Below, piece after piece: positions 17,483-60,861 of a DNA stretch of 64,000 nt. A program made the position numbers and the translations under genes. The notes below the pieces were generated by a model. That model made no database searches and was not told the origin of the DNA. It saw nothing but the letters and a program-made list of their open reading frames with translations. The DNA lies in the IMG/VR virus record IMGVR_UViG_3300018080_008436, positions 248,001 through 312,000 of that record. One strand, given 5' to 3'. Numbering within the stretch: the first letter of the stretch is position 1; each line of letters begins with the position of its first letter.

Positions 17483-18910
17483 TTAATCTTCCCACCATTG
17501 ATCAACTTGCTCTAGTCCAAGACCTTTTAATTCTTGAATAGTTTCTTCTACAGATTTACTGCCATAAATTCCGTATGTGTTCTCCATTTCTTCGCAAAAA
17601 CCCCCAACCATTTTAAAAACTTGACACAAATACTGCCTTTCACTACTTCCAGCATCATAATAAGAGTCTGCTAATTCTCCACTTTCCCTTCTAAAAGCAA
17701 AAGAGAAACAATCTTGGCTGAATTCTGGATCATATGGATCAAGCTTTGAAATACAGAAAACACATGGATCTACTTCATCCGTTTTTAATTCCTGAAGGAG
17801 TCTCGCATTTTCTTCTGCCTTCACCAATACGTTGAGATCAAAAAACATCTTCTTGACCTCTTCCAGGTTATATGTCCCACCTTTGATCGTAACGGTTCTA
17901 TCAGGCTCAATCGTGTAAAATGACTCATCCTCTTCAGGTTCATCTGGAACAACTGGCGTTTTGGCGAAAAACGAATCTGGATACATAAACTGCATCCCAA
18001 GACGCTTCGCAAAAGTCTTATCAGTTGTTTGATCTCCAACCATAATGCATTCACTCACATTCAGCTTGTATTTGTAAATATAAGGAATGGCCATCCCTGA
18101 TTGAGGCTTACGGCAATAGCAACTTACTGGCGGAACCTTATGAGGACAATAAGAGACCTCAACATCATTACAAATTGCTAAAGTTGCATTCGTAACTTCG
18201 AAACACAACTCGGCACCTTTTTCAGTCAACTCGCCTTTTGCAATACCAGATTGGTTTGATACCCCAATAAGGTAATATCCAAGCTTTTTATAGGCCCGTA
18301 AGACCTCTCCCGCCCCTTTCCTTACTTTGATCTCTGTTGGCTTTGTAGGGTACTTCCCATTGCCTCCAACAGTCTCCCTCAAAGTACCATCATAATCAAG
18401 GAAAATTGCTTTGTTTGTAAAACCCTCCCTTGGTTCCCTTCTGAACACTCTTTTCTCCACATTTTCAAAACCTTCGTCTTTCGTCGGTTTTTCAAATTCT
18501 TTCTTCATTTTGAAAAAGACAGAAATAGGGAACATGTTCGGATCTTTCTTAACTTCTTTCAGATCCTCTTTGTCATAAAACACCTTGCCATATCGTTCCA
18601 TCATCCTCTGCAAAGCATTAATCTGACAATCTTCCACAGAAGTTGACATCCAAAGACAACTGATCGGAACATCATGCTTCTTACACATCTCAATAAAAGG
18701 CTTGCGCTTATCTGCTTGCATAAAAGTGCAATCAAGAACAACAGAGTTCCCATTTTTGAGAGAAGCCTCAAGTTTCGGCAACAAATCGAGTGTTCTCCCA
18801 CCCTCTTTATCTCGGCTTAAATACGCATATGTATGCTTCTTCATGATTTCCTTTACTGCCGAGCTTTTCCCACTTGCAGGGAATCCAACCGTCATGATTG
18901 CTTTTTGCAT
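17483..18910 (-). CDS. Polynucleotide 5'-kinase / 3'-phosphatase (P-loop + HAD-IIIA) with C-terminal extension
   Basis: GFPASGKS kinase; FLDYDGTL, SNQSG, CRKP, VGD HAD motifs. Confidence 0.85.
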   Translation of the reverse strand: MQKAIMTVGFPASGKSSAVKEIMKKHTYAYLSRDKEGGRTLDLLPKLEASLKNGNSVVLDCTFMQADKRKPFIEMCKKHDVPISCLWMSTSVEDCQINALQRMMERYGKVFYDKEDLKEVKKDPNMFPISVFFKMKKEFEKPTKDEGFENVEKRVFRREPREGFTNKAIFLDYDGTLRETVGGNGKYPTKPTEIKVRKGAGEVLRAYKKLGYYLIGVSNQSGIAKGELTEKGAELCFEVTNATLAICNDVEVSYCPHKVPPVSCYCRKPQSGMAIPYIYKYKLNVSECIMVGDQTTDKTFAKRLGMQFMYPDSFFAKTPVVPDEPEEDESFYTIEPDRTVTIKGGTYNLEEVKKMFFDLNVLVKAEENARLLQELKTDEVDPCVFCISKLDPYDPEFSQDCFSFAFRRESGELADSYYDAGSSERQYLCQVFKMVGGFCEEMENTYGIYGSKSVEETIQELKGLGLEQVDQWWED

Positions 18911-29221: not shown

Positions 29222-29224
29222 AAT

Positions 29225-29288
29225 AAAAAACCCCGACCAGAAGTCGGGGCCAAAATACACGAAAAAAACCCCGACGAATGTCGAGGTT
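29225..29288 (-). terminator. Two tandem intrinsic terminators of the Phe attenuator
   Basis: AACCTCGAC-ATTC-GTCGGGGTT-T5 and GCCCCGAC-TTCTG-GTCGGGGT-T5. Confidence 0.85.
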
Positions 29289-29326
29289 AAAAAGATCTAA
29301 ACAACACTTTGATCTAACTACCTCGA

Positions 29327-29371
29327 CTAGAGGTGGCTAAAAAATCGAAAGATGTTGTTTAAGTTGTTCAT
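29327..29371 (-). CDS. Leader peptide MNNLNNIFRFFSHL (Phe attenuator)
   Basis: AAGGA RBS, TTT CGA TTT TTT, stop inside 1:2 hairpin. Confidence 0.8.
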   Translation of the reverse strand: MNNLNNIFRFFSHL

Positions 29372-29396
29372 AATGTAAAATCCTTTTGTTGCCCCT

Positions 29397-29427
29397 ATTA
29401 TAGGGTATCATCCATGCTTTTCAAGTC
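29397..29427 (-). promoter_or_regulatory. Sigma70-type promoter GACTTGAAA-N16-TATAAT
   Basis: Same motif at four non-coding RNA loci. Confidence 0.8.
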
Positions 29428-29703: not shown

Positions 29704-30486
29704 TTAGGTTAAAAAATCTTTGTCAACGTAATGCACCATGAACTTACATACAGTATCGATAAGTTCATCAGGCATTCTTTTAAAACATTCGTTCACAAAC
29801 TCATCTGGAACGTTTTTGTAATATGCATGAGCAATTGAGCCAGCCATAGCCGCAATGGTATCGCTGTCTCCACCCATCATTACTGCTTCTCTTATTGTAC
29901 TCTCAAAATCCTCAGAATACAAGAAAGCGTATACAGCTTGCGGAACTGTCTCCTGGCAACTACAATTAAATCCTAGATGCTCAGAGGTCAAAATAAGGTC
30001 CGTTCTGTATCCAAACGACTCTACTGCTTCTCTAATTTCTTGCTTTGTCCCTCCATGCCAAGCTATGAATGTTGCCAAAGCAATTGCTTGAGCACCTTTA
30101 ACTCCCTCTTCATGATTATGAGTCGCATCAGCACTCTTTTTGGCCTCTGCTAGAACATCCTTTTTAGATCTGCAATAGAAAGCAACAGGGCTAACTCTCA
30201 TCGCAGACCCATTGCCATAACTATTATACCCTTCTTCTTGCTCACTTAAAGCCCACTCTTTGAAAGCACTACCATACCCTCTATCTTTGTAATTTCTATA
30301 GTATTCACGAATAGATTGTGAATAGTTTCCTGAATTCATCAAAACATCTGCTACTGCGCAGGTTAGAACAGTATCGTCAGTAAAAATACACTTCTTGTTG
30401 AATAGAAGAAAATTTTTGGTTTTGGGGTGTCTTTTTGGGCCTTCCCAACGAGAGCCTATTATGTCTCCTAAAATCGCGCCTATCAC
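29704..30486 (-). CDS. ADP-ribosylglycohydrolase (DraG/ARH family)
   Basis: GAILGDIIG, TDDT, GNGSAMR, GGDSDT; GTG start after AAAGGAGA. Confidence 0.92.
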   Translation of the reverse strand: MIGAILGDIIGSRWEGPKRHPKTKNFLLFNKKCIFTDDTVLTCAVADVLMNSGNYSQSIREYYRNYKDRGYGSAFKEWALSEQEEGYNSYGNGSAMRVSPVAFYCRSKKDVLAEAKKSADATHNHEEGVKGAQAIALATFIAWHGGTKQEIREAVESFGYRTDLILTSEHLGFNCSCQETVPQAVYAFLYSEDFESTIREAVMMGGDSDTIAAMAGSIAHAYYKNVPDEFVNECFKRMPDELIDTVCKFMVHYVDKDFLT

Positions 30487-31502
30487 AATCTTTCTCCTTT
30501 TACTCTTTCCTTTTCGTACCCTAACCAAACTTTCCAACTTTTCCAGCCTCTATCTTTATAAGTCCTATCTGGCACACTTGGTAAACAAACAGGTCTAGTA
30601 TTTTCTTTCCAATATAAACACCATTCTGTTTTGCTTCTTATTCCCAATTTATGAACGAATTTTTCTGCTTCTTTATAAGGCATAAACCCACTTTTTGCAA
30701 CTTTTATACTCCCCAAATCATAAAATTTGTTCTTTTTCCTTATTAAAAATAAATTCGAAGGAGTGTTATACATATATTCTCTTAAAAGTATCGAACTGTT
30801 CTTAGCCACCCTAACTCTATAATACTTCTCTTTTAAACTTCTAACATTCCCCCTAAAACCATTTATATTTTCTTTTAATTTTAATAACAAACCATATGAG
30901 AACTTCTCACTTCCACTAGTAAGAGATGATTCTATGGAGTTCCTAGATATAGATACATTACCGTCTCCGTCCCATAGCCCTCGTATAAAATCTGGCAGAA
31001 ATTCTTCTGGAACATTAGGCATTTCACATGTCAGGCTTTTTCTCTCAGTTCCACCTATTTTTTTAATTGATTCAACTAAATTTCTACAATAAATGTTCAA
31101 ATGACAATATTTGCTTCTTGTCTCTTTAATGGGTCCATCAAAACCCATCGTTTTTGCGATTAACTCTAATAGATATTTATCTTTATTACTTTGCGTAATT
31201 GAAAACAAACTTTCATAAATACACCCATCTGCCCACCAAAAACCCAAAATATACGCCATATCATGAGTCCATATCTCAAAGAAATCCTCATTTATCGAAT
31301 ATTTATCTCTTTTATAGGACATCTTTTTATACCCCATCCAATCCATGTACGAAACCCATTCCGACTTATATACTTGATGAGGACTGCGAGGAATGAATGG
31401 AGGTCTGTTGTTTTTACACCAATCTTCCCATTCTGACTGCTTTTTAAGACCTAATTGACGTACATATTGTCTTGCTTCTTCAAATAACAGGAATTTACTC
31501 AT
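30483..31502 (-). mobile_element. Free-standing LAGLIDADG homing endonuclease with flanking repeat domains
   Basis: AYILGFWWADG and FIRGLWDGDG motifs. Confidence 0.85.
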
Positions 31503-33684: not shown

Positions 33685-33762
33685 TGGTCGGGATAGCTGG
33701 ATTCGAACCAGCGACTCCTTGACCCCCAGTCAAGTGCTCTAACCAGGCTGAGCTACATCCCG
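33685..33762 (-). tRNA. tRNA-Pro(GGG)
   Basis: Loop CTGGGGG, C1-G72, CCA. Confidence 0.93.
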
Positions 33763-33811
33763 ACAATTATTCCGACACTTATCCCGACATTTTGTCGGGA
33801 TTCAGAAAAAC

Positions 33812-33926
33812 GCCAGTGTATTGCTCATTTATACTACCTCACAAAGTTTAGAATGCTGAATAGAACCTTATTCAAGTTCACTTTTAATAGTACTGTATGG
33901 GTGGGATTCGAACCCACATCTCTGGC
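33812..33926 (-). ncRNA. Permuted tRNA-like RNA carrying CAGCA module
   Basis: GCCAG/CTGGC ends, T-arm first (GTGGG TTCGAAT CCCAC), GAACTT-GAATA-AGGTTC-TATT-CAGCA. Confidence 0.5.
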
Positions 33927-33927
33927 T

Positions 33928-34003
33928 TGGTATCCCCAACGGGAATTGAACCCGTATCTGTTGGTTGAGAACCAACTATCCTAGACCGTTAGACGATGGG
34001 GAC
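33928..34003 (-). tRNA. tRNA-Glu(CTC)
   Basis: Loop TTCTCAA, CCA. Confidence 0.93.
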
Positions 34004-34010
34004 ATTAAAA

Positions 34011-34138
34011 ATGAGTCGGAAGGAATCGAACCTTCATTCCCTGGTTGATTTATTAAACATCAAATAGTTGCTGGAACGAAACTTATACAGTTTCACTTGG
34101 TTTTATGTCCAGGAGTTCTACCATTAAACTACGACCCA
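34011..34138 (-). ncRNA. tRNA-like RNA whose anticodon loop is replaced by a ~65-nt insert with CAGCAA module
   Basis: Intact acceptor, D and T arms, CCTGG/CCAGG stem, no encoded CCA. Confidence 0.7.
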
Positions 34139-34158
34139 AGTTGTATCTCTAATGAGAT

Positions 34159-34235
34159 TGGTCGGGTATGCAGGATTCGAACCTGCGATCTCATCATCCC
34201 AAATGATGCGCCTTACCAGACTAGGCTAATACCCG
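34159..34235 (-). tRNA. tRNA-Pro(TGG)
   Basis: Loop TTTGGGA, CCA. Confidence 0.93.
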
Positions 34236-34239
34236 ATAC

Positions 34240-34406
34240 AGAAGTGTTTTATCCTGTTAAACTATCCCCAACAAGATCGTACTTTAAGTCATCTGACACT
34301 AACTCATTTCTGACCCCAGAATATATTTTATTGTTTTGAATGTCAGTTCGTAACAACTACTTTACACTCTTAAGCCGAGGCTGGGACTCGAACCCAGATC
34401 TCTCCT
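34240..34406 (-). ncRNA. Circularly permuted tRNA mimic (YrlA-like topology)
   Basis: Order AGGAG, T-arm, CCTCGGC, long loop, GTTGGGG, D-arm, CTTCT. Confidence 0.6.
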
Positions 34407-34408
34407 TT

Positions 34409-34499
34409 TGGTGACGCAGACGGGATTCGAACCCGCAAAGGAATCTCTTCCTACCAGATTGAAAGTCTGGTTACTTCAGGCCAATTTGTATACTGCGCC
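34409..34499 (-). tRNA. tRNA-Glu(TTC) with long variable arm
   Basis: Loop CTTTCAA; AGGAA-GAGA-TTCCT extra arm; CCA. Confidence 0.85.
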
Positions 34500-34508
34500 A
34501 TTTTTTAG

Positions 34509-34626
34509 TCAGGACGGCTGGATTCGAACCAACTCCTTTAGCTCCTCAAGCTAAAATAAATATTGCTGTAGCGAACCTTATTGTCAAGTTCATGTTTATA
34601 ACGTGCTACCATTACACTACGTCCTG
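34509..34626 (-). ncRNA. tRNA-like RNA with ~47-nt CAGCAA module between D-arm and anticodon arm
   Basis: CAGGACG/CGTCCTG acceptor, TTAGC-TTGAGGA-GCTAA hairpin, T-arm; no encoded CCA. Confidence 0.7.
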
Positions 34627-34671
34627 ATGGTCTGACCCTCAAAAATCATAAGTCTGATTCTCGAAAAGTCA

Positions 34672-34750
34672 TGGTCTGGATGGTAGGATTCGAACCTACG
34701 CTACTCCTCAGTCCAAGTGAGGCGGGATGACCAGACTTCCCCACATCCAG
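34672..34750 (-). tRNA. tRNA-Pro(TGG), divergent
   Basis: Loop CTTGGAC, CCA. Confidence 0.88.
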
Positions 34751-34780
34751 ATTAAGTCTTCTAAATTTTCAAAGATCATT

Positions 34781-34856
34781 TGGTGACCCCAGTGGGAATC
34801 GAACCCAACCTTCCCAGGATGAAAACCTGGTGTCCTAGCCGATAGACGATGGGGCC
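34781..34856 (-). tRNA. tRNA-Glu(TTC)
   Basis: Loop TTTTCAT, CCA. Confidence 0.93.
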
Positions 34857-34865
34857 ATGGACAAT

Positions 34866-34931
34866 AAAAAAGCCCTCCTAACGCAAGCTAAGAGGGCACA
34901 AAAAAAGCCCTCCCGCTCATGGCAGAAGGGC
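34866..34931 (-). terminator. Two tandem intrinsic terminators of the Glu/Pro attenuator
   Basis: GCCCTTCTGC-CATGA-GCGGGAGGGC-T7 and GCCCTCTTAGC-TTGC-GTTAGGAGGGC-T6. Confidence 0.88.
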
Positions 34932-34953
34932 CAAAATCATAGTTATGATCTAA

Positions 34954-35031
34954 CTACAGATCGGCTGACCTCCTGCCAAAGGCTGGCGGTTCTTCTCGTT
35001 CTGGTTCTCGAATGTACATGTAGTTGTTCAT
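34954..35031 (-). CDS. Leader peptide MNNYMYIREPEREEPPAFGRRSADL (Glu/Pro attenuator)
   Basis: AAAGGA RBS; 4 GAA + 3 CCR within 8 codons. Confidence 0.8.
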   Translation of the reverse strand: MNNYMYIREPEREEPPAFGRRSADL

Positions 35032-35056
35032 AACAAATTTTCCTTTCGTTACCCCC

Positions 35057-35087
35057 ATTATAAACCATCCTAGAGACTTTTCAAGTC
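35057..35087 (-). promoter_or_regulatory. Promoter GACTTGAAA-N16-TATAAT
   Basis: Shared motif. Confidence 0.8.
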
Positions 35088-35429: not shown

Positions 35430-35947
35430 TACTTCTGAAAAACTCTTGCTCTTTTGGCATGAGATTGTCTAGCGGCAACCATTCGTGGATCATCATCAGC
35501 CAAACTCAATCCTTGTTCTGCTCCCAAAAGGAAAGAGTCAACGACTTCACGGGCCAATTTATGATTTTCTCCCCATTCTGGGTTTGTGGCAAATAGAAGG
35601 TCAATACCATTCAAAAGAGCCAAAGAGCCTGCTAAGGCCAAAGGGCGTTCGTTTGGCTTAATTTTACCCTCTGCAACGGCTTTATCGAGGTAATCCTCAA
35701 CAACAGGGAAAAGAACCTGGGTATAGGTTGCTCCTTGAGAGGTATCAGCGGTTACACCTTTGATAACTCCAATAACTTCTTTTACAACTGCCATTTCTTC
35801 TGGAGTTGGGTCGTCATAAGCAACCCAGGTTACTGAGGCACCTAAACCTGCGTTCAGAGCTACTACTTTTGCTTGGCTTGGTGTACAACCAGTTAATGGG
35901 ATCATCAACATGGCTACGATTGCGGTGAAAAACATACTTCTTTTCAT
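35429..35947 (-). CDS. Putative lipoprotein
   Basis: Signal peptide with lipobox LTGC. Confidence 0.7.
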   Translation of the reverse strand: MKRSMFFTAIVAMLMIPLTGCTPSQAKVVALNAGLGASVTWVAYDDPTPEEMAVVKEVIGVIKGVTADTSQGATYTQVLFPVVEDYLDKAVAEGKIKPNERPLALAGSLALLNGIDLLFATNPEWGENHKLAREVVDSFLLGAEQGLSLADDDPRMVAARQSHAKRARVFQK

Positions 35948-36465
35948 TTCAAGTTCTCCTTATTTTTGGTTAATTTTACTGAAATAAATCTTGGTTCATC
36001 TTTTCTACTAGTGACAGTCGCAAAATCAGAGCATTTTTCTACAATTTCGTCCATTTTGCTCTTCGCAACATTAATATTTACTCTACGTCTGATCTTCATG
36101 GTGAAATGAAGTTCATGGCCATGATCAATAAACTCTTGAGCGTGTTTCATTTTATGCTCAACATCATGATCGTCAATCGAAGGAGTAAAACGTATCTCCT
36201 TCATCTCATGTTTTTGATCTTTTTGTTGCTTCTTTTGTTTTTTACCTTTTTGATATTTCCACTTACCGTAATCAATCAACTTACATAATGGGTTGTTCTT
36301 CTCGGTTTCCCCAGAGAAACAAACTAGGTCTAAACCTTTGTCCTGAGCTATCTCAATAGCATCAAGTGTTTTGATTTCTCTGTGAAATTTGTTATTTTCA
36401 TCAACCAAATCAAGAATGACGAAGCTTTTGCTGTCAACGACCAAGAACGGTTCCATGGACTTCAA
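35944..36465 (-). CDS. infC: Translation initiation factor IF-3
   Basis: GLDLV..PLCKLIDYGKWKY..KEIRFTPSIDDHD..K. Confidence 0.9.
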   Translation of the reverse strand: MKSMEPFLVVDSKSFVILDLVDENNKFHREIKTLDAIEIAQDKGLDLVCFSGETEKNNPLCKLIDYGKWKYQKGKKQKKQQKDQKHEMKEIRFTPSIDDHDVEHKMKHAQEFIDHGHELHFTMKIRRRVNINVAKSKMDEIVEKCSDFATVTSRKDEPRFISVKLTKNKENLK

Positions 36466-53891: not shown

Positions 53892-54563
53892 CTATCCCAA
53901 CCATTTGTCTCTTTTAAATCCACCTATTTCTTGAATGCCTCCCATAATTTTTTGTTTTATTTCAACGCTGTGTAATCTTACTGTGCAAATTCCGTATTTT
54001 AGTTTACCCTGAAATTCGCTAGATTTAAAATAACATTTTCTCAAATTTTCTTTCGTCAAACTAAGTGCATTAAGCCAAAATTCAACAATCTCTTGTTCAG
54101 AAACTCCATTGTTTGTATAGGCATTTATAGAAAGAGCAAATCTTTTTTCTTCAAACTCAAAGTGTTCTCTAAGGAACTTCATAAAAAGAATCATCATGTC
54201 AATATCGCTATTGCAGAATGTCACTCCTTTATTGGATTCTTTTGTTCCTTCTGCCCAATAAAGAATACAGCCAACCCGAAAACTTTCAGATATTTTAGCA
54301 AGTGCTCTTCCATCAGTTTGCCACTTCCTTCTTTTTCTTCTGAATTTTTCCGAATATTTCTCCTGTTTACCAAAATAACCACCTTTTCTTGTTTTTGTCC
54401 TGTGCCGCAATTTTAGGTTTTCTATTTGTTCTTTCGTTAGTTGAATATCTCGAACCCATAAACTAACAGACGATTGAGACACATCTAGAATCTTGGCTAT
54501 TTTCTTTATAGATTGTCCACTTTTTCTTAGTTCTCTTGCTTTGTTTCTTTCGACTTTTTTCAT
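53892..54563 (-). mobile_element. HTH + single-motif LAGLIDADG-like endonuclease inside tRNA operon
   Basis: SIKKIAKILDVSQSSVSLW HTH; ILYWAEGTK..FCNSD; start trimmed to MKKVE. Confidence 0.6.
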
Positions 54564-54621
54564 TTTCGAACCCCCATAGTTATATGTGATATAACATATT
54601 ATACAGCAAGTTCGAACTTTT

Positions 54622-54696
54622 TGGTAGCAGTATCGGGACTTGAACCCGAACGGCACTCCTTATGAAAGAGTCGCACTACCATTATGCTATACTGCT
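54622..54696 (-). tRNA. tRNA-Met or Ile2 (CAT)
   Basis: Loop TTCATAA, CCA. Confidence 0.85.
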
Positions 54697-55187: not shown

Positions 55188-55278
55188 TGGTGGGAGTAGC
55201 AGGACTTGAACCTGCGTTTACCTTTCGGCCTCCTGTGTATCAGACAGGCGCTCTAACCAAATACTGAGCTATACTCCC
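55188..55278 (-). tRNA. tRNA-Ile(GAT) with long variable arm
   Basis: Loop CTGATAC; GCC-GAAA-GGT arm; CCA. Confidence 0.85.
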
Positions 55279-55929: not shown

Positions 55930-55937
55930 TCAGGCAC

Positions 55938-55970
55938 AAAAAAAGCCCAAGCTCCTTAGAGCCTGGGCTT
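55938..55970 (-). terminator. Attenuator terminator of tRNA operon 3
   Basis: AAGCCCAGGCTC-TAAG-GAGCTTGGGCTT-T5. Confidence 0.88.
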
Positions 55971-55988
55971 CGTAAATCTGCTTATCTA

Positions 55989-56069
55989 TCAGAACATGCG
56001 ATAGCGCAGATCAGAAGCCCTGTGGCTCCAATCGCGTCTAATAATATGCATGTCTCTAACAACGTTCAT
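55989..56069 (-). CDS. Leader peptide MNVVRDMHIIRRDWSHRASDLRYRMF (multivalent attenuator)
   Basis: TAAGGA RBS; codons match the downstream tRNA set. Confidence 0.8.
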   Translation of the reverse strand: MNVVRDMHIIRRDWSHRASDLRYRMF

Positions 56070-56166
56070 TTTTCTTAAATCCTTATTCGATTTAGTTTTT
56101 CAACTTACCCTCATTAGTCACATTTGATTTGAGTTTTTCTCAGATCTGTACCAAGAAGTTATTATC

Positions 56167-56197
56167 ATTATAAGCCTTATTCAGAGTATTTCAAGTC
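56167..56197 (-). promoter_or_regulatory. Promoter GACTTGAAA-N16-TATAAT
   Basis: Shared motif. Confidence 0.8.
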
Positions 56198-58916: not shown

Positions 58917-60350
58917 TTAGACGGTGACCCCTTCTGGGACTACGATTTCATACTTCTCGATTGCTCGATCAAGTACTGCCATTGGCGAGAAATCAGTGCC
59001 TCCGAGAACTGCGCCTAAGATTGAAGGACTGAAGCCACTTACAAGAGCAACATTCTCATGCGTACCTCTTGCAGGACTTCCTGCATATCCAGCAGTATTC
59101 CAATATACAATCTTTGGACGACTGTATCCATTTGCTTCCCACTCTTCCATGCATCTTTCAATAGTGGTCTTATCGCAGTTACTAGCGCCAGAGCACCAGC
59201 CTCCACCATTATCGAACTGCATGTCTGAAATGATCAACAGACAGTTTGGAATCTGTTCATCAGTTACGTTGAACATCTTTGCAGAGTTCAGGATCTGATC
59301 AAGAGCCGCCTTGACGTTCGTTGATCCACAATATCCTTCTCTTCTGCAACGCTGAATTCCCTGAACAAAAGTCTTTCCCTTCCAATCGACAAGGTGACTG
59401 TCGTTTGAGAATGGAATGAACTTCCTGTAGAAAGGGTTATCCTTTCCAACCCTGTCAGAGCAGTACAATCCCAAACTGGTTGAGATATCAATAGCTCTGA
59501 TAGAACCAGAGACAGTAACTCCCATAGATCCAGAGAAGTCACAAATTGGCATGATTCTCATGTTGCAGTCTTCCATGAAGTTTGGAAGAGCTTCAAACTG
59601 AGCATTTGCCAACTTACCATCCTTGTTAGCAGTACGAAGAACGTCATGTGGGAACAAAGCACTTGCGTTAACCTTGTTGTCAGAGTCCTCGTCAGTCAAA
59701 GACTCTCTCCACTGATCGTATCTTGCAGGATCATGCTTCAAGAATGCGTTAGCAGATCTTGCCATTGCGACAGAAGGAACAGTGTTGTAGTCAATGTCAT
59801 GCCAGTCGCCTGAGCACATTGCAGTCTCTACAACATTAGTGTACTCAGCCAAGTGCTTTCTGAATACCTTTGGAGACATTCCGAGAGCCTTTCTAAGCTT
59901 TGCGAAAACAACCTTGTTCTTCTTCTCTCTTGGTGCCCACTTGCAAGCAAGACCATGCTTATCAGCAATAGCTCTTGCCCAGTACTGGATTGCAGTATCT
60001 TCGCAAGGAGTATCGATACATGCAGTCAAGTCATCCCAACGTCCAGTCTCTGGAATAAGATGAATATTGACAGTAATCCACTCAGGATGCTTCTCAGCCA
60101 TCCACTTCAATACAGAACGGAATCCGCTTCTGTTACCTGCTCCACCTCTAGCATCACGAAGCCAGAAAGCAAGCTTTGCGGCACGAAGTTGATCGGACTT
60201 GAACGCAGGCTTAAACAAGTTCAGAGCACCTGCCTCCGAACCGTAGTAGCTACCACGCTTCTCGAAAAGTGATCCTGCCTTGGAGAAGAACTCCAAAAGT
60301 GCGTTTCCAGTTGAGTCATACAGAAAGTCGTTGTTGTGTCCTCTTGCCAT
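58917..60350 (-). CDS. TROVE-like DUF2828 + vWA protein
   Basis: WLRDARGGAG, GRWDDL, KWAPRE, VPSVAM, CDFSGSM MIDAS, ISDMQFD, VYWN, VSGFSP. Confidence 0.8.
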   Translation of the reverse strand: MARGHNNDFLYDSTGNALLEFFSKAGSLFEKRGSYYGSEAGALNLFKPAFKSDQLRAAKLAFWLRDARGGAGNRSGFRSVLKWMAEKHPEWITVNIHLIPETGRWDDLTACIDTPCEDTAIQYWARAIADKHGLACKWAPREKKNKVVFAKLRKALGMSPKVFRKHLAEYTNVVETAMCSGDWHDIDYNTVPSVAMARSANAFLKHDPARYDQWRESLTDEDSDNKVNASALFPHDVLRTANKDGKLANAQFEALPNFMEDCNMRIMPICDFSGSMGVTVSGSIRAIDISTSLGLYCSDRVGKDNPFYRKFIPFSNDSHLVDWKGKTFVQGIQRCRREGYCGSTNVKAALDQILNSAKMFNVTDEQIPNCLLIISDMQFDNGGGWCSGASNCDKTTIERCMEEWEANGYSRPKIVYWNTAGYAGSPARGTHENVALVSGFSPSILGAVLGGTDFSPMAVLDRAIEKYEIVVPEGVTV

Positions 60351-60381
60351 CGTACCATCCTCCTATTGTTGGTTTTGTGTC

Positions 60382-60447
60382 AAAAAAAAGACCAGTCAAA
60401 CTTGGTTCCGAGTCCCATCTCGCGTATGGAACAAAGTCTAACTGGTC
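60382..60447 (-). terminator. Long hairpin + T8 between RNA array and TROVE-like gene
   Basis: GACCAGTTAGACTT..AAGTTTGACTGGTC-T8. Confidence 0.75.
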
Positions 60448-60460
60448 AAAGTTAAAAATC

Positions 60461-60818
60461 GGAACAGGTTAGCAATTTTGGTTTTCATTTCAAGTGAAAG
60501 TTTTGGTTGCTGTAACTAACCTTCTATCCTAAATTAAAAATTTGAACAGACTGACTTGTTTTTTTTAGCATAAAAAATTTTGAGTTGCTGAATGCAGTCT
60601 TATATCAAATTGTTTTTCTAAATTTTCCTTTTTCTTGTTTTCAAAGAAACAAGTGAAACAGCTTGGGTTTTCCATCCTTTATTTCAGACCTCGATGAATT
60701 TGGGTCCTCAAATTTATTTTTAAAACCCTCTCGACTGGGTTCTCGTTTTATTTCTGTCAGGGCGACTCTGACGCTCGTTTTATCGTGTTTTTTGGTTGCA
60801 GTAACCAAGCTTTATTCA
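60461..60818 (-). ncRNA. Array of three structured RNA units with helix-(C/T)AGCAA-type motif
   Basis: Units 60461..60529, 60540..60610, 60654..60818 with covarying stems; third has ACTGCAA. Confidence 0.7.
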
Positions 60819-60830
60819 GTTGTTGGTTCC

Positions 60831-60861
60831 ATTATAAGGATTACGAAAAACTTTTCAAGTC
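60831..60861 (-). promoter_or_regulatory. Promoter GACTTGAAA-N16-TATAAT
   Basis: Shared motif. Confidence 0.8.

Follow-up and report, generated by a model that had tools for sequence, protein, structure and literature searches.

Concerning the control of transcription by leader peptides, the best described systems are the attenuators of amino-acid biosynthetic operons (trpL, hisL, pheL/RF01859, thrL, leuL and ilvL), in which a short translated ORF carries a run of codons for the sensed amino acid, the pairings 1:2, 2:3 and 3:4 are mutually exclusive, an intrinsic terminator lies before the regulated genes and the position of the ribosome decides the fold. In the pheM-pheST attenuator of E. 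coli the same principle is applied to a component of the translation apparatus, the Phe-tRNA synthetase, and is read out through the cognate aminoacyl-tRNA. T-box riboswitches also make a terminator/antiterminator decision upstream of translation-related genes in response to the state of a specific tRNA, although they bind the uncharged tRNA directly through a specifier codon and a T-box bulge, without translation. In the proline-codon leaders mgtL and mgtP of Salmonella mgtA/mgtCBR (PMC3641672), Pro codons in a short leader ORF make the transcription decision sensitive to Pro-tRNA supply. Such leaders also respond to the speed of Pro-Pro peptide-bond formation, and thereby to EF-P. Large phages (T4, T5, KVP40-type and huge phages) carry clusters of tRNA genes which are thought to compensate for codon-usage mismatch or host tRNA loss, and which are long mixed arrays with no described sensing element.

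In the current study, a 64,000-nucleotide stretch of a huge uncultured phage (positions 248,001 to 312,000 of IMG/VR record IMGVR_UViG_3300018080_008436; hereafter the window), which occurs in sediment and seawater metagenomes, was found to place a small Glu/Pro-rich leader ORF and two predicted transcription terminators directly in front of its Glu and Pro tRNA genes, suggesting that these tRNAs are probably made only when ribosomes run short of them. Compared with the classical attenuators, the regulated genes are tRNAs rather than enzymes, the element is phage-borne, single leaders mix two to seven amino acids chosen to match the tRNAs downstream, and some leaders possess two terminators linked by a relay. 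Where pheM-pheST controls a synthetase protein operon in a bacterium, the target here is the tRNA itself, which closes a direct feedback loop on the species being sensed. The mgtL and mgtP leaders control Mg2+ transport and virulence genes, do not pair Pro with Glu codons and do not precede tRNA genes. In contrast to the known phage arrays, the tRNAs are split into small amino-acid-specific operons, each with its own promoter, codon-matched leader and terminator(s). For Cellulophaga phage phi4:1, a long mixed array of 24 annotated tRNA genes, only the annotation table was read and the upstream DNA was not examined for a leader ORF, so that this phage is not informative as to generality. Full-text literature searches found no report of attenuators before tRNA genes, subscription-only literature not being covered.

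Architecture of the Glu/Pro leader

The observation made in the initial annotation, namely a Glu/Pro leader with a double terminator at 35087-34857, was confirmed, all elements being present on the minus strand (Table 1). The promoter matches 11 of 12 positions of the sigma-70 consensus, and its longer form GACTTGAAA-N16-TATAAT occurs five times in the window against 0.02 expected, three of these sites preceding the three tRNA clusters. The leader ORF begins about 20 nt after the predicted start site and carries four GAA and three CCR codons within eight codons; GAA and CCA/CCG are read by the UUC and UGG anticodons of the tRNAs encoded downstream. The leader also holds a 1:2 hairpin, an antiterminator strand and two tandem intrinsic terminators, the second of which ends 9 nt before tRNA-Glu. 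Segment 2 pairs with CCUUCUGCC of terminator 1 (T1) in a duplex of -16.9 kcal/mol which none of 300 shuffles reached, while the 3' arm of T1 (GCGGGAGGGC) pairs with the 5' arm of terminator 2 (T2; GCCCUCUU) to form a relay hairpin of -13.8 kcal/mol. The 194-nt leader as a whole folds with z = -4.3 against shuffles.

Table 1. Predicted features of the Glu/Pro leader and of its two sister elements in the window (all on the minus strand)
Feature	Coordinates	Description
Sigma-70-type promoter	35057..35087	TTGAAA-16-TATAAT at 35084-35057; -35 at 35084-35079, -10 at 35062-35057
Shine-Dalgarno sequence (SD)	35041..35046	AAAGGA, 9 nt before the AUG
Leader ORF	34954..35031	25 codons plus UAG: MNNYMYIREPEREEPPAFGRRSADL
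Sensor codons	34984..35010	CGA GAA CCA GAA CGA GAA GAA CCG CCA (4 Glu, 3 Pro, 2 Arg)
1:2 hairpin	34972..34989	CCGCCA-GCCUU-UGGCAGG, overlapping the Pro codons; about -7.6 kcal/mol
Segment 2 (B), antiterminator strand	34961..34977	GGCAGGAGG-UCA-GCCGA; GGCAGGAGG at 34977-34969, extended by GCCGA at 34965-34961
Terminator 1 (T1)	34906..34932	C arm 34932-34922, D arm 34916-34906; -18.7 kcal/mol; U run 34905-34899
Terminator 2 (T2)	34872..34897	E arm 34897-34887, F arm 34882-34872; -17.4 kcal/mol; U run 34871-34866
Regulated tRNA operon	33685..34856	Glu(UUC), starting at 34856; Pro(UGG); Glu(UUC, long arm); Pro(UGG); an interrupted tRNA-like element; Glu(CUC); Pro(GGG)
Phe leader	29222..29427	Promoter 29427-29397 (same motif); ORF 29371-29327 (MNNLNNIFRFFSHL); T1 29288-29267; T2 29250-29230; precedes two tRNA-Phe genes (29221-29066)
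Operon-3 leader	55930..56197	Promoter 56197-56167 (same motif); ORF 56069-55989 (MNVVRDMHIIRRDWSHRASDLRYRMF); single terminator 55970-55943; precedes Arg x4, Trp, Ile x2, Val, Asp x2, Met and His tRNAs (55929-53805)

The two other tRNA clusters of the window share this layout but carry different codons: FRFF precedes the Phe tRNAs and VVRDMHIIRRDWSHR precedes the Arg, Trp, Ile, Val, Asp, Met and His tRNAs, while EPEREEPP precedes the Glu and Pro tRNAs. The Phe leader is built in the same way as the Glu/Pro leader from different bases, and has the geometry of a textbook attenuator.

Membership of described RNA families was assessed against Rfam, where only tRNA passed threshold. Phe_leader (RF01859) scored 15.6 bits against a threshold of 55 bits and no other leader family (His, Trp, Thr or Leu) appeared, permissive thresholds returning only sub-threshold matches driven by the terminators; the element therefore works like these families but is not a sequence member of any. 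The possibility that uncharged tRNA or a protein is sensed directly by the RNA, in a T-box-like or PyrR/TRAP-like manner and with no need for leader translation, draws on the presence of a terminator/antiterminator alternative upstream of translation-related genes and on a weak, sub-threshold PyrR-site match (22 bits against a 54-bit threshold, E = 1). However, no T-box motif is present and no T-box (RF00230) match was obtained even at E values up to 10, no other cis-regulatory family reached threshold, the leader of about 190 nt is far shorter than a T-box and has an ORF occupying its 5' half, and an ORF with a start codon, a conserved frame and synonymous variation at the cognate codons is present in all 19 leaders described below. 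We regard this alternative as very improbable.

Leaders of related phages and conservation of the pairings

Relatives were identified through the syntenic phage IF3 gene, and 19 distinct leaders were recovered from this and related uncultured phages (individual leaders are designated below by the L number of the relative concerned). In almost every one, the codons of the leader track the tRNA genes behind it. Seven Glu/Pro leaders carry E.PEQEPP, whereas six operons that also possess His and Ile tRNAs carry leaders of the IHIPEHIEPEH type; His is absent from all seven Glu/Pro leaders and occurs one to three times in all six His-containing ones. An Asn-Gln-Asn cluster has NQQNNQQNQN, and a relative of operon 3 has MDMHIRRWDR, with AGA, CGA and AGG matching its three Arg tRNAs. 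Enrichment of cognate codons appears in all classes, with binomial P values from 1e-2 to 2e-6 per leader, and a cross-assignment matrix was highest on the diagonal for four of five representatives, the His/Ile/Glu/Pro leader scoring equally against the nested Glu/Pro set. The match is imperfect in places, since the L105/L166 and L115 leaders have Pro codons although no tRNA-Pro gene was detected in the stretch examined, and the L024 Phe leader has only two Phe codons. The ORF of the Glu/Pro leader is conserved in six related phages, and codon identity is selected, as Pro codons vary between CCA, CCC, CCU and CCG while remaining Pro; several close relatives have only a weak SD.

Each of the 19 leaders has a canonical terminator just before the first tRNA and, right after the cognate run, a segment of 8-13 bp complementarity to the 5' arm of that terminator, which none of 300 shuffles reached in 10 of the 19. 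The antiterminator helix pairs in 97% of cells, with compensatory changes in 4 of 10 pairs and no match among 500 shuffles, while slid registers gave 37-66%. The C arm covaries with both its B and its D partner. The 1:2 hairpin is retained in all seven Glu/Pro leaders (-5.4 to -10.3 kcal/mol), its outer pairs being invariant and its inner stem variable, and RNAalifold predicted both this hairpin and T1 independently across the seven leaders.

These data bear on two alternative readings. Firstly, the attenuator might work as proposed but act as a general sensor of translation capacity that is not specific for the listed tRNAs, whereby any slowing of ribosomes (starvation, ribosome damage or host shut-off) would allow all tRNA operons to be read together. 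All three leaders of the window share the promoter, two share the 5' UTR and the MNN start, non-cognate codons such as NYITI and the CGA before UUU are conserved, and a ribosome stalled anywhere in the first half of the ORF gives the antiterminated fold when its footprint is masked. Nevertheless, codon content differs between operons and follows tRNA content in five independent classes, which a purely general sensor would not need, and we consider this reading unlikely. Secondly, the promoter, ORF and terminators might form a separate unit encoding a micropeptide or a trans-acting sRNA, the tRNAs being expressed by constitutive leak or from elsewhere; the terminated transcript would be a stable, structured RNA of about 150-185 nt, and attenuator products with trans functions (rnTrpL/peTrpL) are known in Sinorhizobium. 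Against this, the peptides are conserved only in their cognate-codon run and in the nucleotides that pair with the terminator, the element always sits directly before tRNA genes with no intervening promoter, and the codon-tRNA match would have no explanation. A trans role could exist in addition, but not instead, and this reading is judged highly unlikely.

Further searches for counterparts were unproductive. Among cultured phages, blastn returned only generic tRNA hits and tblastn with the phage IF3 returned nothing useful, while the only distant relative found through synteny of a DHH gene (L003) had no tRNAs nearby. A scan of viral sequences with a 5'-UTR pattern, whose spacing differed from that of the leaders, gave 16 hits, all by chance. 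The EQEPP codon pattern gave no hits in IMG/VR and three chance hits inside unrelated bacterial genes in the GTDB genomes, with no tRNAs nearby, and no bacterial counterpart was thus found; the HIPEHIE pattern recovered only the contig already identified. A non-exhaustive search of IMG/VR with the bare promoter pattern yielded only operon 3 of the phage itself, and the other tRNA operons of this phage outside the window were not covered. The leader is identical in the DNA contigs of three sequencing runs, which show no variation within it.

Ribosome position, folding and the proposed mechanism

The most likely explanation, in which we place considerable though not complete confidence, is ribosome-mediated transcription attenuation of a phage tRNA operon. 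In this view, host RNA polymerase starts at the sigma-70 promoter and a ribosome translates the 25-codon leader just behind it. If Glu-tRNA and Pro-tRNA are plentiful, the ribosome would run through GAA/CCR to the stop codon, unwinding and covering segment 2, so that the 5' arm of T1 pairs with its own 3' arm and transcription stops, any polymerase that leaks through meeting T2. If either tRNA is scarce, the ribosome would stall on the Glu/Pro run, covering segment 1 and leaving segment 2 free to capture the 5' arm of T1 as soon as it is made; the orphaned 3' arm of T1 would then capture the near-identical 5' arm of T2, neither terminator hairpin would form, and the polymerase would read into the tRNA genes, whose products relieve the stall, giving negative feedback and tRNA on demand. 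Every tRNA operon seen in this phage clade carries its own leader. What the analysis establishes is the sequence anatomy, its conservation, the covariation of the pairings and the agreement between codons and tRNAs, whereas translation of the leader, stalling, the kinetic order of folding and the biological purpose are inferred. A likely purpose is the topping up of tRNAs depleted by host shut-off or by host tRNA-cleaving defences, although plain amino-acid starvation would also trigger read-through and extra tRNA would not help under that condition.

Footprint-mask folding, a fold-as-transcribed approximation, showed that with a ribosome on the cognate codons the 5' arm of the terminator is sequestered (0.8-1.0), and that sequestration falls to 0.2-0.6 once the ribosome has passed them, the switch falling at the end of the cognate run. 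The fit is less clear for operon 3, L105, L115 and the Asn/Gln leader, in which the ORF ends 17-33 nt beyond segment 2 and a terminating ribosome would sit between B and C rather than on B. At equilibrium the terminator hairpins win for most modelled ribosome positions (T1 in 13 of 18 leaders at every position), including the Glu/Pro sensor codons of this window, and equilibrium probabilities in most leaders do not separate stalled from unstalled ribosomes; the model therefore rests on folding order, as in classical attenuators, which was not simulated. Read-through in response to cognate charged tRNA, and its requirement for leader translation, were not measured, there being no RNA or experimental data and no RNA run that holds the phage, and neither the host nor whether it couples transcription to translation is known. 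No promoter fits between T2 and the first tRNA, so the first tRNAs can only be made by read-through.

The relay is conserved as a D:E hairpin of -13.8 to -18.2 kcal/mol in all five double-terminator leaders, appears in the MFE structure at the transcript length where E has just emerged, and E tracks C between L026 and L114. Its kinetics were not examined, and it may be only partial in this window, where T2 is stronger than the D:E hairpin and forms at equilibrium.

The interpretation offered in the initial annotation is therefore supported in its core by comparative evidence which was not available to that annotation: a leader-peptide attenuator with Glu/Pro sensor codons, a 1:2 / 2:3 / 3:4 scheme of alternative pairings and a second terminator reached by a relay, built like the Phe leader from unrelated bases. 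Three of its side inferences fared less well. Cross-talk through CGA codons, read by a tRNA-Arg of operon 3, is weak for this leader, as CGA occurs in only 3 of 7 Glu/Pro leaders and the position reads R, Q or L in relatives; for the Phe leader, where CGA-UUU is kept in 3 of 3 cases, the idea is open. EF-P sensitivity, for which mgtL and mgtP are the closest precedent, is plausible but was not tested; EPP is kept in 7 of 7 Glu/Pro leaders but is absent from the His/Ile/Glu/Pro class. Finally, the element had been framed mainly as a sensor of Glu and Pro as amino acids, whereas the more telling point is that the regulated genes are the cognate tRNAs themselves, so that the element reads tRNA supply.

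Implications for phage-encoded tRNAs

On a broader reading, which we hold to be more likely than not, a clade of huge phages runs its whole tRNA complement as a set of autonomous supply-on-demand modules, each small operon being gated by a leader peptide whose codons are a barcode of exactly the tRNA species encoded behind it, up to seven amino acids and individual Arg isoacceptors. The phage would therefore measure, codon by codon, which tRNAs the infected cell lacks and replace only those, the shortage possibly arising from host shut-off or from tRNA-cleaving defences, and tandem terminators linked by a strand relay would sharpen the switch. This would be the first case of tRNA genes controlled by translation of their own cognate codons.

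The two-terminator relay suggests a possible general way to lower leak without losing inducibility, and the leaders, at roughly 150-250 nt, are compact and could serve as tRNA-availability sensors for synthetic biology. The codon barcode allows function to be predicted from sequence alone, and flags which tRNA-like genes with odd shapes are decoded as what. tRNA genes in bacteria and phages are described as being under promoter-level control (growth rate, stringent response or phage timing), and a direct feedback loop in which the ribosome tests for the very tRNAs encoded downstream would be new. It also bears on the question of why phages carry tRNAs, be it codon bias, host tRNA degradation or escape from anticodon nucleases, since the sensor says that shortage of specific tRNAs during infection is what the phage responds to.

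Organisation of the Glu/Pro leader and its genomic context

The element lies on the minus strand and, reading 5' to 3' from position 35087, comprises a promoter (GACTTGAAA-N16-TATAAT) matching 11 of 12 consensus positions, a 5' UTR of about 20 nt in which AAAGGA is placed 9 nt before the AUG, a leader ORF encoding MNNYMYIREPEREEPPAFGRRSADL, and two intrinsic terminators (T1 and T2), each followed by a U run. The first gene downstream, encoding tRNA-Glu(UUC), begins only 9 nt after the U run of T2 and opens a cluster of three Glu and three Pro tRNAs. Each of the pairings listed in the initial annotation was found to be present. The 1:2 hairpin CCGCCA/UGGCAGG lies over the Pro codons (-7.6 kcal/mol), while GGCAGGAGG, extended by GCCGA, pairs with the 5' arm of T1 (-16.9 kcal/mol; 0 of 300 shuffles reach this value) and the 3' arm of T1 pairs with the 5' arm of T2 as a hairpin of -13.8 kcal/mol. 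The whole leader folds better than all 200 shuffles (z = -4.3), and the observation made from the sequence alone is confirmed.

Coordinates of the leader and of other features of the window and of related loci
Sequence	Coordinates	Strand	Feature
Window	35087	-	5' end of the element (promoter)
Window	35031-34954	-	Leader ORF
Window	34932-34906	-	Terminator T1
Window	34897-34872	-	Terminator T2
Window	34856	-	Start of tRNA-Glu(UUC)
Window	33685	-	End of the Glu/Pro tRNA cluster
Window	34409-34499	-	tRNA with a long extra arm or insert
Window	55188-55278	-	tRNA with a long extra arm or insert
Window	34011-34138	-	Interrupted tRNA-like element, first
Window	about 34520-34650	-	Interrupted tRNA-like element, second
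Window	about 34375-34405	-	T-arm-like minihelix
Window	about 33895-33927	-	T-arm-like minihelix
Window	35944-36465	-	IF3 gene
Window	17483-18910	-	Polynucleotide kinase/phosphatase gene
Window	53892-54656	-	HTH-domain ORF
Window	30483-31502	-	LAGLIDADG endonuclease-like ORF
Window	60360-60861	-	Promoter motif and stretch without an ORF
Window	58917-60350		DUF2828/DUF7788 gene
L024	8001-8062		tRNA-like sequence after the leader terminator
L117	9090-9149		Leader cut off by the contig end

The window matches two IMG/VR contigs of 296 and 476 kb at 99–100% protein identity (DHH and IF3 genes), and the same DNA is present in sediment and seawater metagenomes. It encodes a range of phage-type functions, namely a RecD2-type helicase, a PIN-PhoH protein, a polynucleotide kinase/phosphatase, a DHH phosphoesterase, an ADP-ribosylglycohydrolase, homing-endonuclease-like ORFs and its own translation initiation factor IF3 with both domains. 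This is a huge uncultured phage with translation-related genes, for which no cultured relative was found in the phage collection.

All 20 tRNA genes of the window sit in three minus-strand clusters. The promoter motif occurs five times in the window against 0.02 expected, and three of these sites head the three clusters. At another site the motif is followed by about 470 nt with no ORF, containing a repeated GGTTAC(T/A)GCAACCAAAA motif and a terminator-like hairpin, ahead of a DUF2828/DUF7788 gene; this stretch may encode non-coding RNA(s), although no Rfam family matches it. The other two clusters have the same design as the Glu/Pro cluster. Upstream of the two tRNA-Phe genes are a promoter, the ORF MNNLNNIFRFFSHL, two terminators and the same 1:2, 2:3 and relay logic built from different bases. 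Operon 3, which holds Arg x4, Trp, Ile x2, Val, Asp x2, Met and His tRNAs, is preceded by a promoter, the ORF MNVVRDMHIIRRDWSHRASDLRYRMF and one terminator with an antiterminator. Fourteen of the fifteen codons from V3 to R17 of this ORF are cognate to tRNAs of that operon, and all seven amino acids are represented. Mobile-element-like genes are interleaved with the tRNA clusters, since an HTH-domain ORF sits between tRNA-Met and tRNA-His inside operon 3 and a LAGLIDADG endonuclease-like ORF lies between the Phe and Glu/Pro operons.

Several tRNAs with Glu(UUC), Ile(GAU), His or Pro anticodons are 85–95 nt long with a long extra arm or insert, a shape that is normal only for Leu, Ser and Tyr tRNAs in bacteria. 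As this trait is conserved across the clade, being seen also in the related loci L024, L027, L037, L049, L113 and L115, the charging identity of these tRNAs is in question. The Glu/Pro operon furthermore contains interrupted tRNA-like elements of uncertain identity. The first scores 46.7 bits as a tRNA with an insert of about 57 nt and receives a doubtful Asp(AUC) call from ARAGORN in intron mode, while the second has tRNA-like ends around a long insert and is not called by either tool. Short T-arm-like minihelices (GGGTTCGAnTCCC with flanking stems) follow two of the tRNAs, and may be processing signals or tRNA remnants.

Leader codons and tRNA content in related phages

The phage IF3 gene lies 0.9 kb upstream of the leader, is syntenic with the Glu/Pro tRNA operon across the clade and has homologues at 37–71% identity in metagenomes. 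Metagenome and viral contigs were searched with an alignment of these homologues and individual homologues were looked up, which yielded syntenic loci (designated by L numbers) with tRNA clusters downstream. The short ORF found upstream of the first tRNA in each is listed below.

Leader peptides and downstream tRNAs in loci related to the window
Locus	Leader peptide	tRNAs downstream
L024/L025	MNNYITIERPEQEPPAPSWRTLGL	Pro x3, Glu
L026	MNNNITIEQPEQEPPAFGWRTVE	Glu, Pro
L027	MRNYITIERPEQEPPAPCWRPLKV	Glu, Pro, Pro, Glu
L111	MRNYITIELPEQEPPAPGWRNT	Glu, Pro
L113	MNYAITTEQPEQEPPVGDWRM	Glu, Pro, Ser(GGA), Glu, Glu
L114	MNYYINNQEPEPEEPPALSWRIVD	Pro, Glu, Glu, Pro, Glu
L037	..KMIVQIPEHIIENPEPITGEGVVD	His, Ile, Glu, Glu, Pro, Pro, Glu
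L040	MQAVVIHIHSQEIPESECGRAMA	His, Ile, Glu, Pro
L049	MTVMIHIPEHIEPEHEGALE	His, Glu, Ile, Glu, Ile, Pro, Pro
L053	MIFNIPEIHPEEPIANKQFGLDEL	His, Glu, Ile, Pro, Glu, Pro
L115	MNNVIHIPEHIEIPEPIGKGYGTALY	His, His, Ile, Glu, Ile
L105/L166	MKMNINTIHIPEHIEIPEPIGKGYGCVMS	His, Ile, Glu
L105 (second cluster)	MFFINQQNNQQNQNSESNLGMVVQIILLAV	Asn, Gln, Asn
L111 (Phe)	MNTTTNILVRFFSPA	Phe
L024 (Phe)	MKIESYISTRFSTAQVFLG	Phe x2
L124	MKNVMDMHIRRWDRSF...	Arg(CCU), Arg(UCU), Arg(ACG), Trp, Ile, Asp, Met, His

In L124, the three Arg codons AGA, CGA and AGG match its three Arg tRNA isoacceptors. His codons are absent from all seven Glu/Pro leaders and present in all six leaders of operons that contain tRNA-His. When compared with the amino-acid frequencies of the long ORFs of the window, cognate residues are enriched in every class, for example with P = 5e-6 (L049), 3e-5 (operon 3) and 2e-6 (Asn/Gln), and cross-assigning leaders to the wrong tRNA sets removes the enrichment, except for the nested Glu/Pro and His/Ile/Glu/Pro sets. 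The match is imperfect in places, as two leaders carry Pro codons although no tRNA-Pro gene was detected in the stretch examined, and one Phe leader has only two Phe codons. Some relatives have weak ribosome-binding sites. The two Glu-containing classes are clades and so count as few independent events; even so, five distinct codon sets match five distinct tRNA sets. A further leader, in L117, is truncated and reads MNYNNYISVPEPSEPSCLLA..., adding Ser to the Glu/Pro run, while the relative L113 has a tRNA-Ser(GGA) inside its Glu/Pro operon. In L024, a tRNA-like sequence of about 62 nt lies directly after the terminator of the Glu/Pro leader, with an acceptor stem, a T arm and a UUUCAAU loop but no anticodon stem, and is not called by ARAGORN.

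RNA structure and the predicted attenuation switch

All 19 leaders have a canonical terminator immediately before the first tRNA. All 19 also have a segment complementary to the 5' arm of the terminator, starting 41–57 nt after the AUG and just past the cognate run, although the terminator sequences differ completely between classes. Within the seven Glu/Pro leaders the antiterminator helix pairs in 97.1% of cells, four of ten pairs show changes on both sides, no shuffle out of 500 reaches the observed score, and slid registers pair in only 37–66%. The variable positions of the 5' arm of the terminator covary with both partners, the 3' arm and the antiterminator strand, and RNAalifold, given no hint, returns the 1:2 hairpin and T1. 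The 1:2 hairpin is present in seven of seven (-5.4 to -10.3 kcal/mol), with invariant CC/GG outer pairs and a variable inner stem. Pro codons vary among CCA, CCC, CCU and CCG while remaining Pro, which indicates selection on decoding and not only on RNA sequence.

In order to examine how the element most likely works, a 28-nt ribosome footprint was modelled at each codon and the transcript was folded as it exists just before the 3' arm of T1 is made. With the ribosome on the cognate codons or earlier, the 5' arm of T1 is sequestered (0.8–1.0), whereas sequestration falls to 0.2–0.6 once the ribosome has moved past them. In the window the switch lies between the two Pro codons, and in the Phe leaders it lies just after FF. 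This is the classical logic, whereby stalling gives an antiterminator and read-through while smooth translation gives a terminator. While the pairings and their covariation are seen directly in the sequences, the folding order is an inference: at full equilibrium the terminators win in most leaders and at most ribosome positions, and the decision must therefore be kinetic, as in trp or his. There are no transcript, ribosome or functional data for this phage, whose host is not known. In leaders whose ORF runs far past segment 2, the antiterminator strand, a terminating ribosome would sit between the two strands and not on one of them, and the fit to the classical geometry is less clear in these cases.

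Double terminators occur in the window, in L026, L113 and L114, and in the Phe leader of the window, while single terminators occur in L024, L027, L111 and all the other leaders. In every double case the 5' arm of T2 (E) is nearly the same as that of T1 (C), so the 3' arm of T1 (D) can pair with either. The D:E hairpin scores -13.8 to -18.2 kcal/mol, comparable to the terminators themselves, and with a stalled ribosome the MFE at the transcript length where E has just emerged is antiterminator plus D:E in all five. Between L026 and L114 the C, D and E arms change together, which fits a constraint on D:E, though gene conversion between the two terminators would look the same. The design would let T2 catch polymerases that leak through a formed T1, while being bypassed in the antiterminated state. 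In this window, however, T2 is 3.6 kcal/mol stronger than D:E and forms at equilibrium, and the relay may here be only partly effective. We regard the relay as conserved and plausible, but untested.

Relation to known attenuators and implications for tRNA supply

The initial annotation read this region as a Glu/Pro attenuator repeating the double-terminator logic of the Phe leader with unrelated bases, and this interpretation is supported. Its proposal of cross-talk through CGA codons, whose tRNA-Arg(TCG) is in operon 3, fares less well: CGA is present in three of seven Glu/Pro leaders and those positions are Q or L elsewhere, so it is not a conserved feature here. CGA-UUU is nevertheless conserved in all three Phe leaders, and CGA appears among the Arg codons of the L124 leader, so that a role as a slow codon or as an Arg(UCG) input remains possible for Phe. 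With regard to the suggested EF-P sensitivity, EPP is invariant in the Glu/Pro class and absent in the His/Ile/Glu/Pro class. The idea, which was not tested, is reasonable by analogy with the Pro-codon leaders of Salmonella mgtA/mgtCBR.

The element satisfies each criterion of a leader-peptide attenuator that can be examined from sequence, and it is not a member of any Rfam family, as only tRNA passes threshold, Phe_leader scores 15.6 bits against 55, and there is no T-box. The closest functional precedents are the amino-acid operon leaders and the pheM-pheST attenuator. What differs here is that the targets are tRNA genes, that the element is carried by a phage, that leaders mix several amino acids matched to the tRNA content of the operon, and that some leaders have terminators linked by a relay. 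Full-text literature searches found no description of attenuators in front of tRNA genes, and a codon-pattern scan of one genome per bacterial species found no counterpart.

Based on these findings we conclude, with fairly high confidence in the mechanism, that this is a real and conserved element, most likely a ribosome-dependent attenuator governing a phage tRNA operon, and one of a family of codon-matched leaders in a clade of huge phages. The polynucleotide kinase/phosphatase of the window, together with the T4 Rnl1-type RNA ligases in relatives, hints that tRNA damage is a real pressure on this clade, although that link is inference. In the relatives (L125, L126 and L127) the ligases lie next to the OGFr_N-like gene, and PARP/WGR, NADAR, ADP-ribosylglycohydrolase and ART genes are also found; together with the kinase/phosphatase of the window, these look like a tRNA-repair and ADP-ribosylation toolkit. 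Because the regulated products are the cognate tRNAs, the circuit would in this view constitute a negative feedback on tRNA supply.
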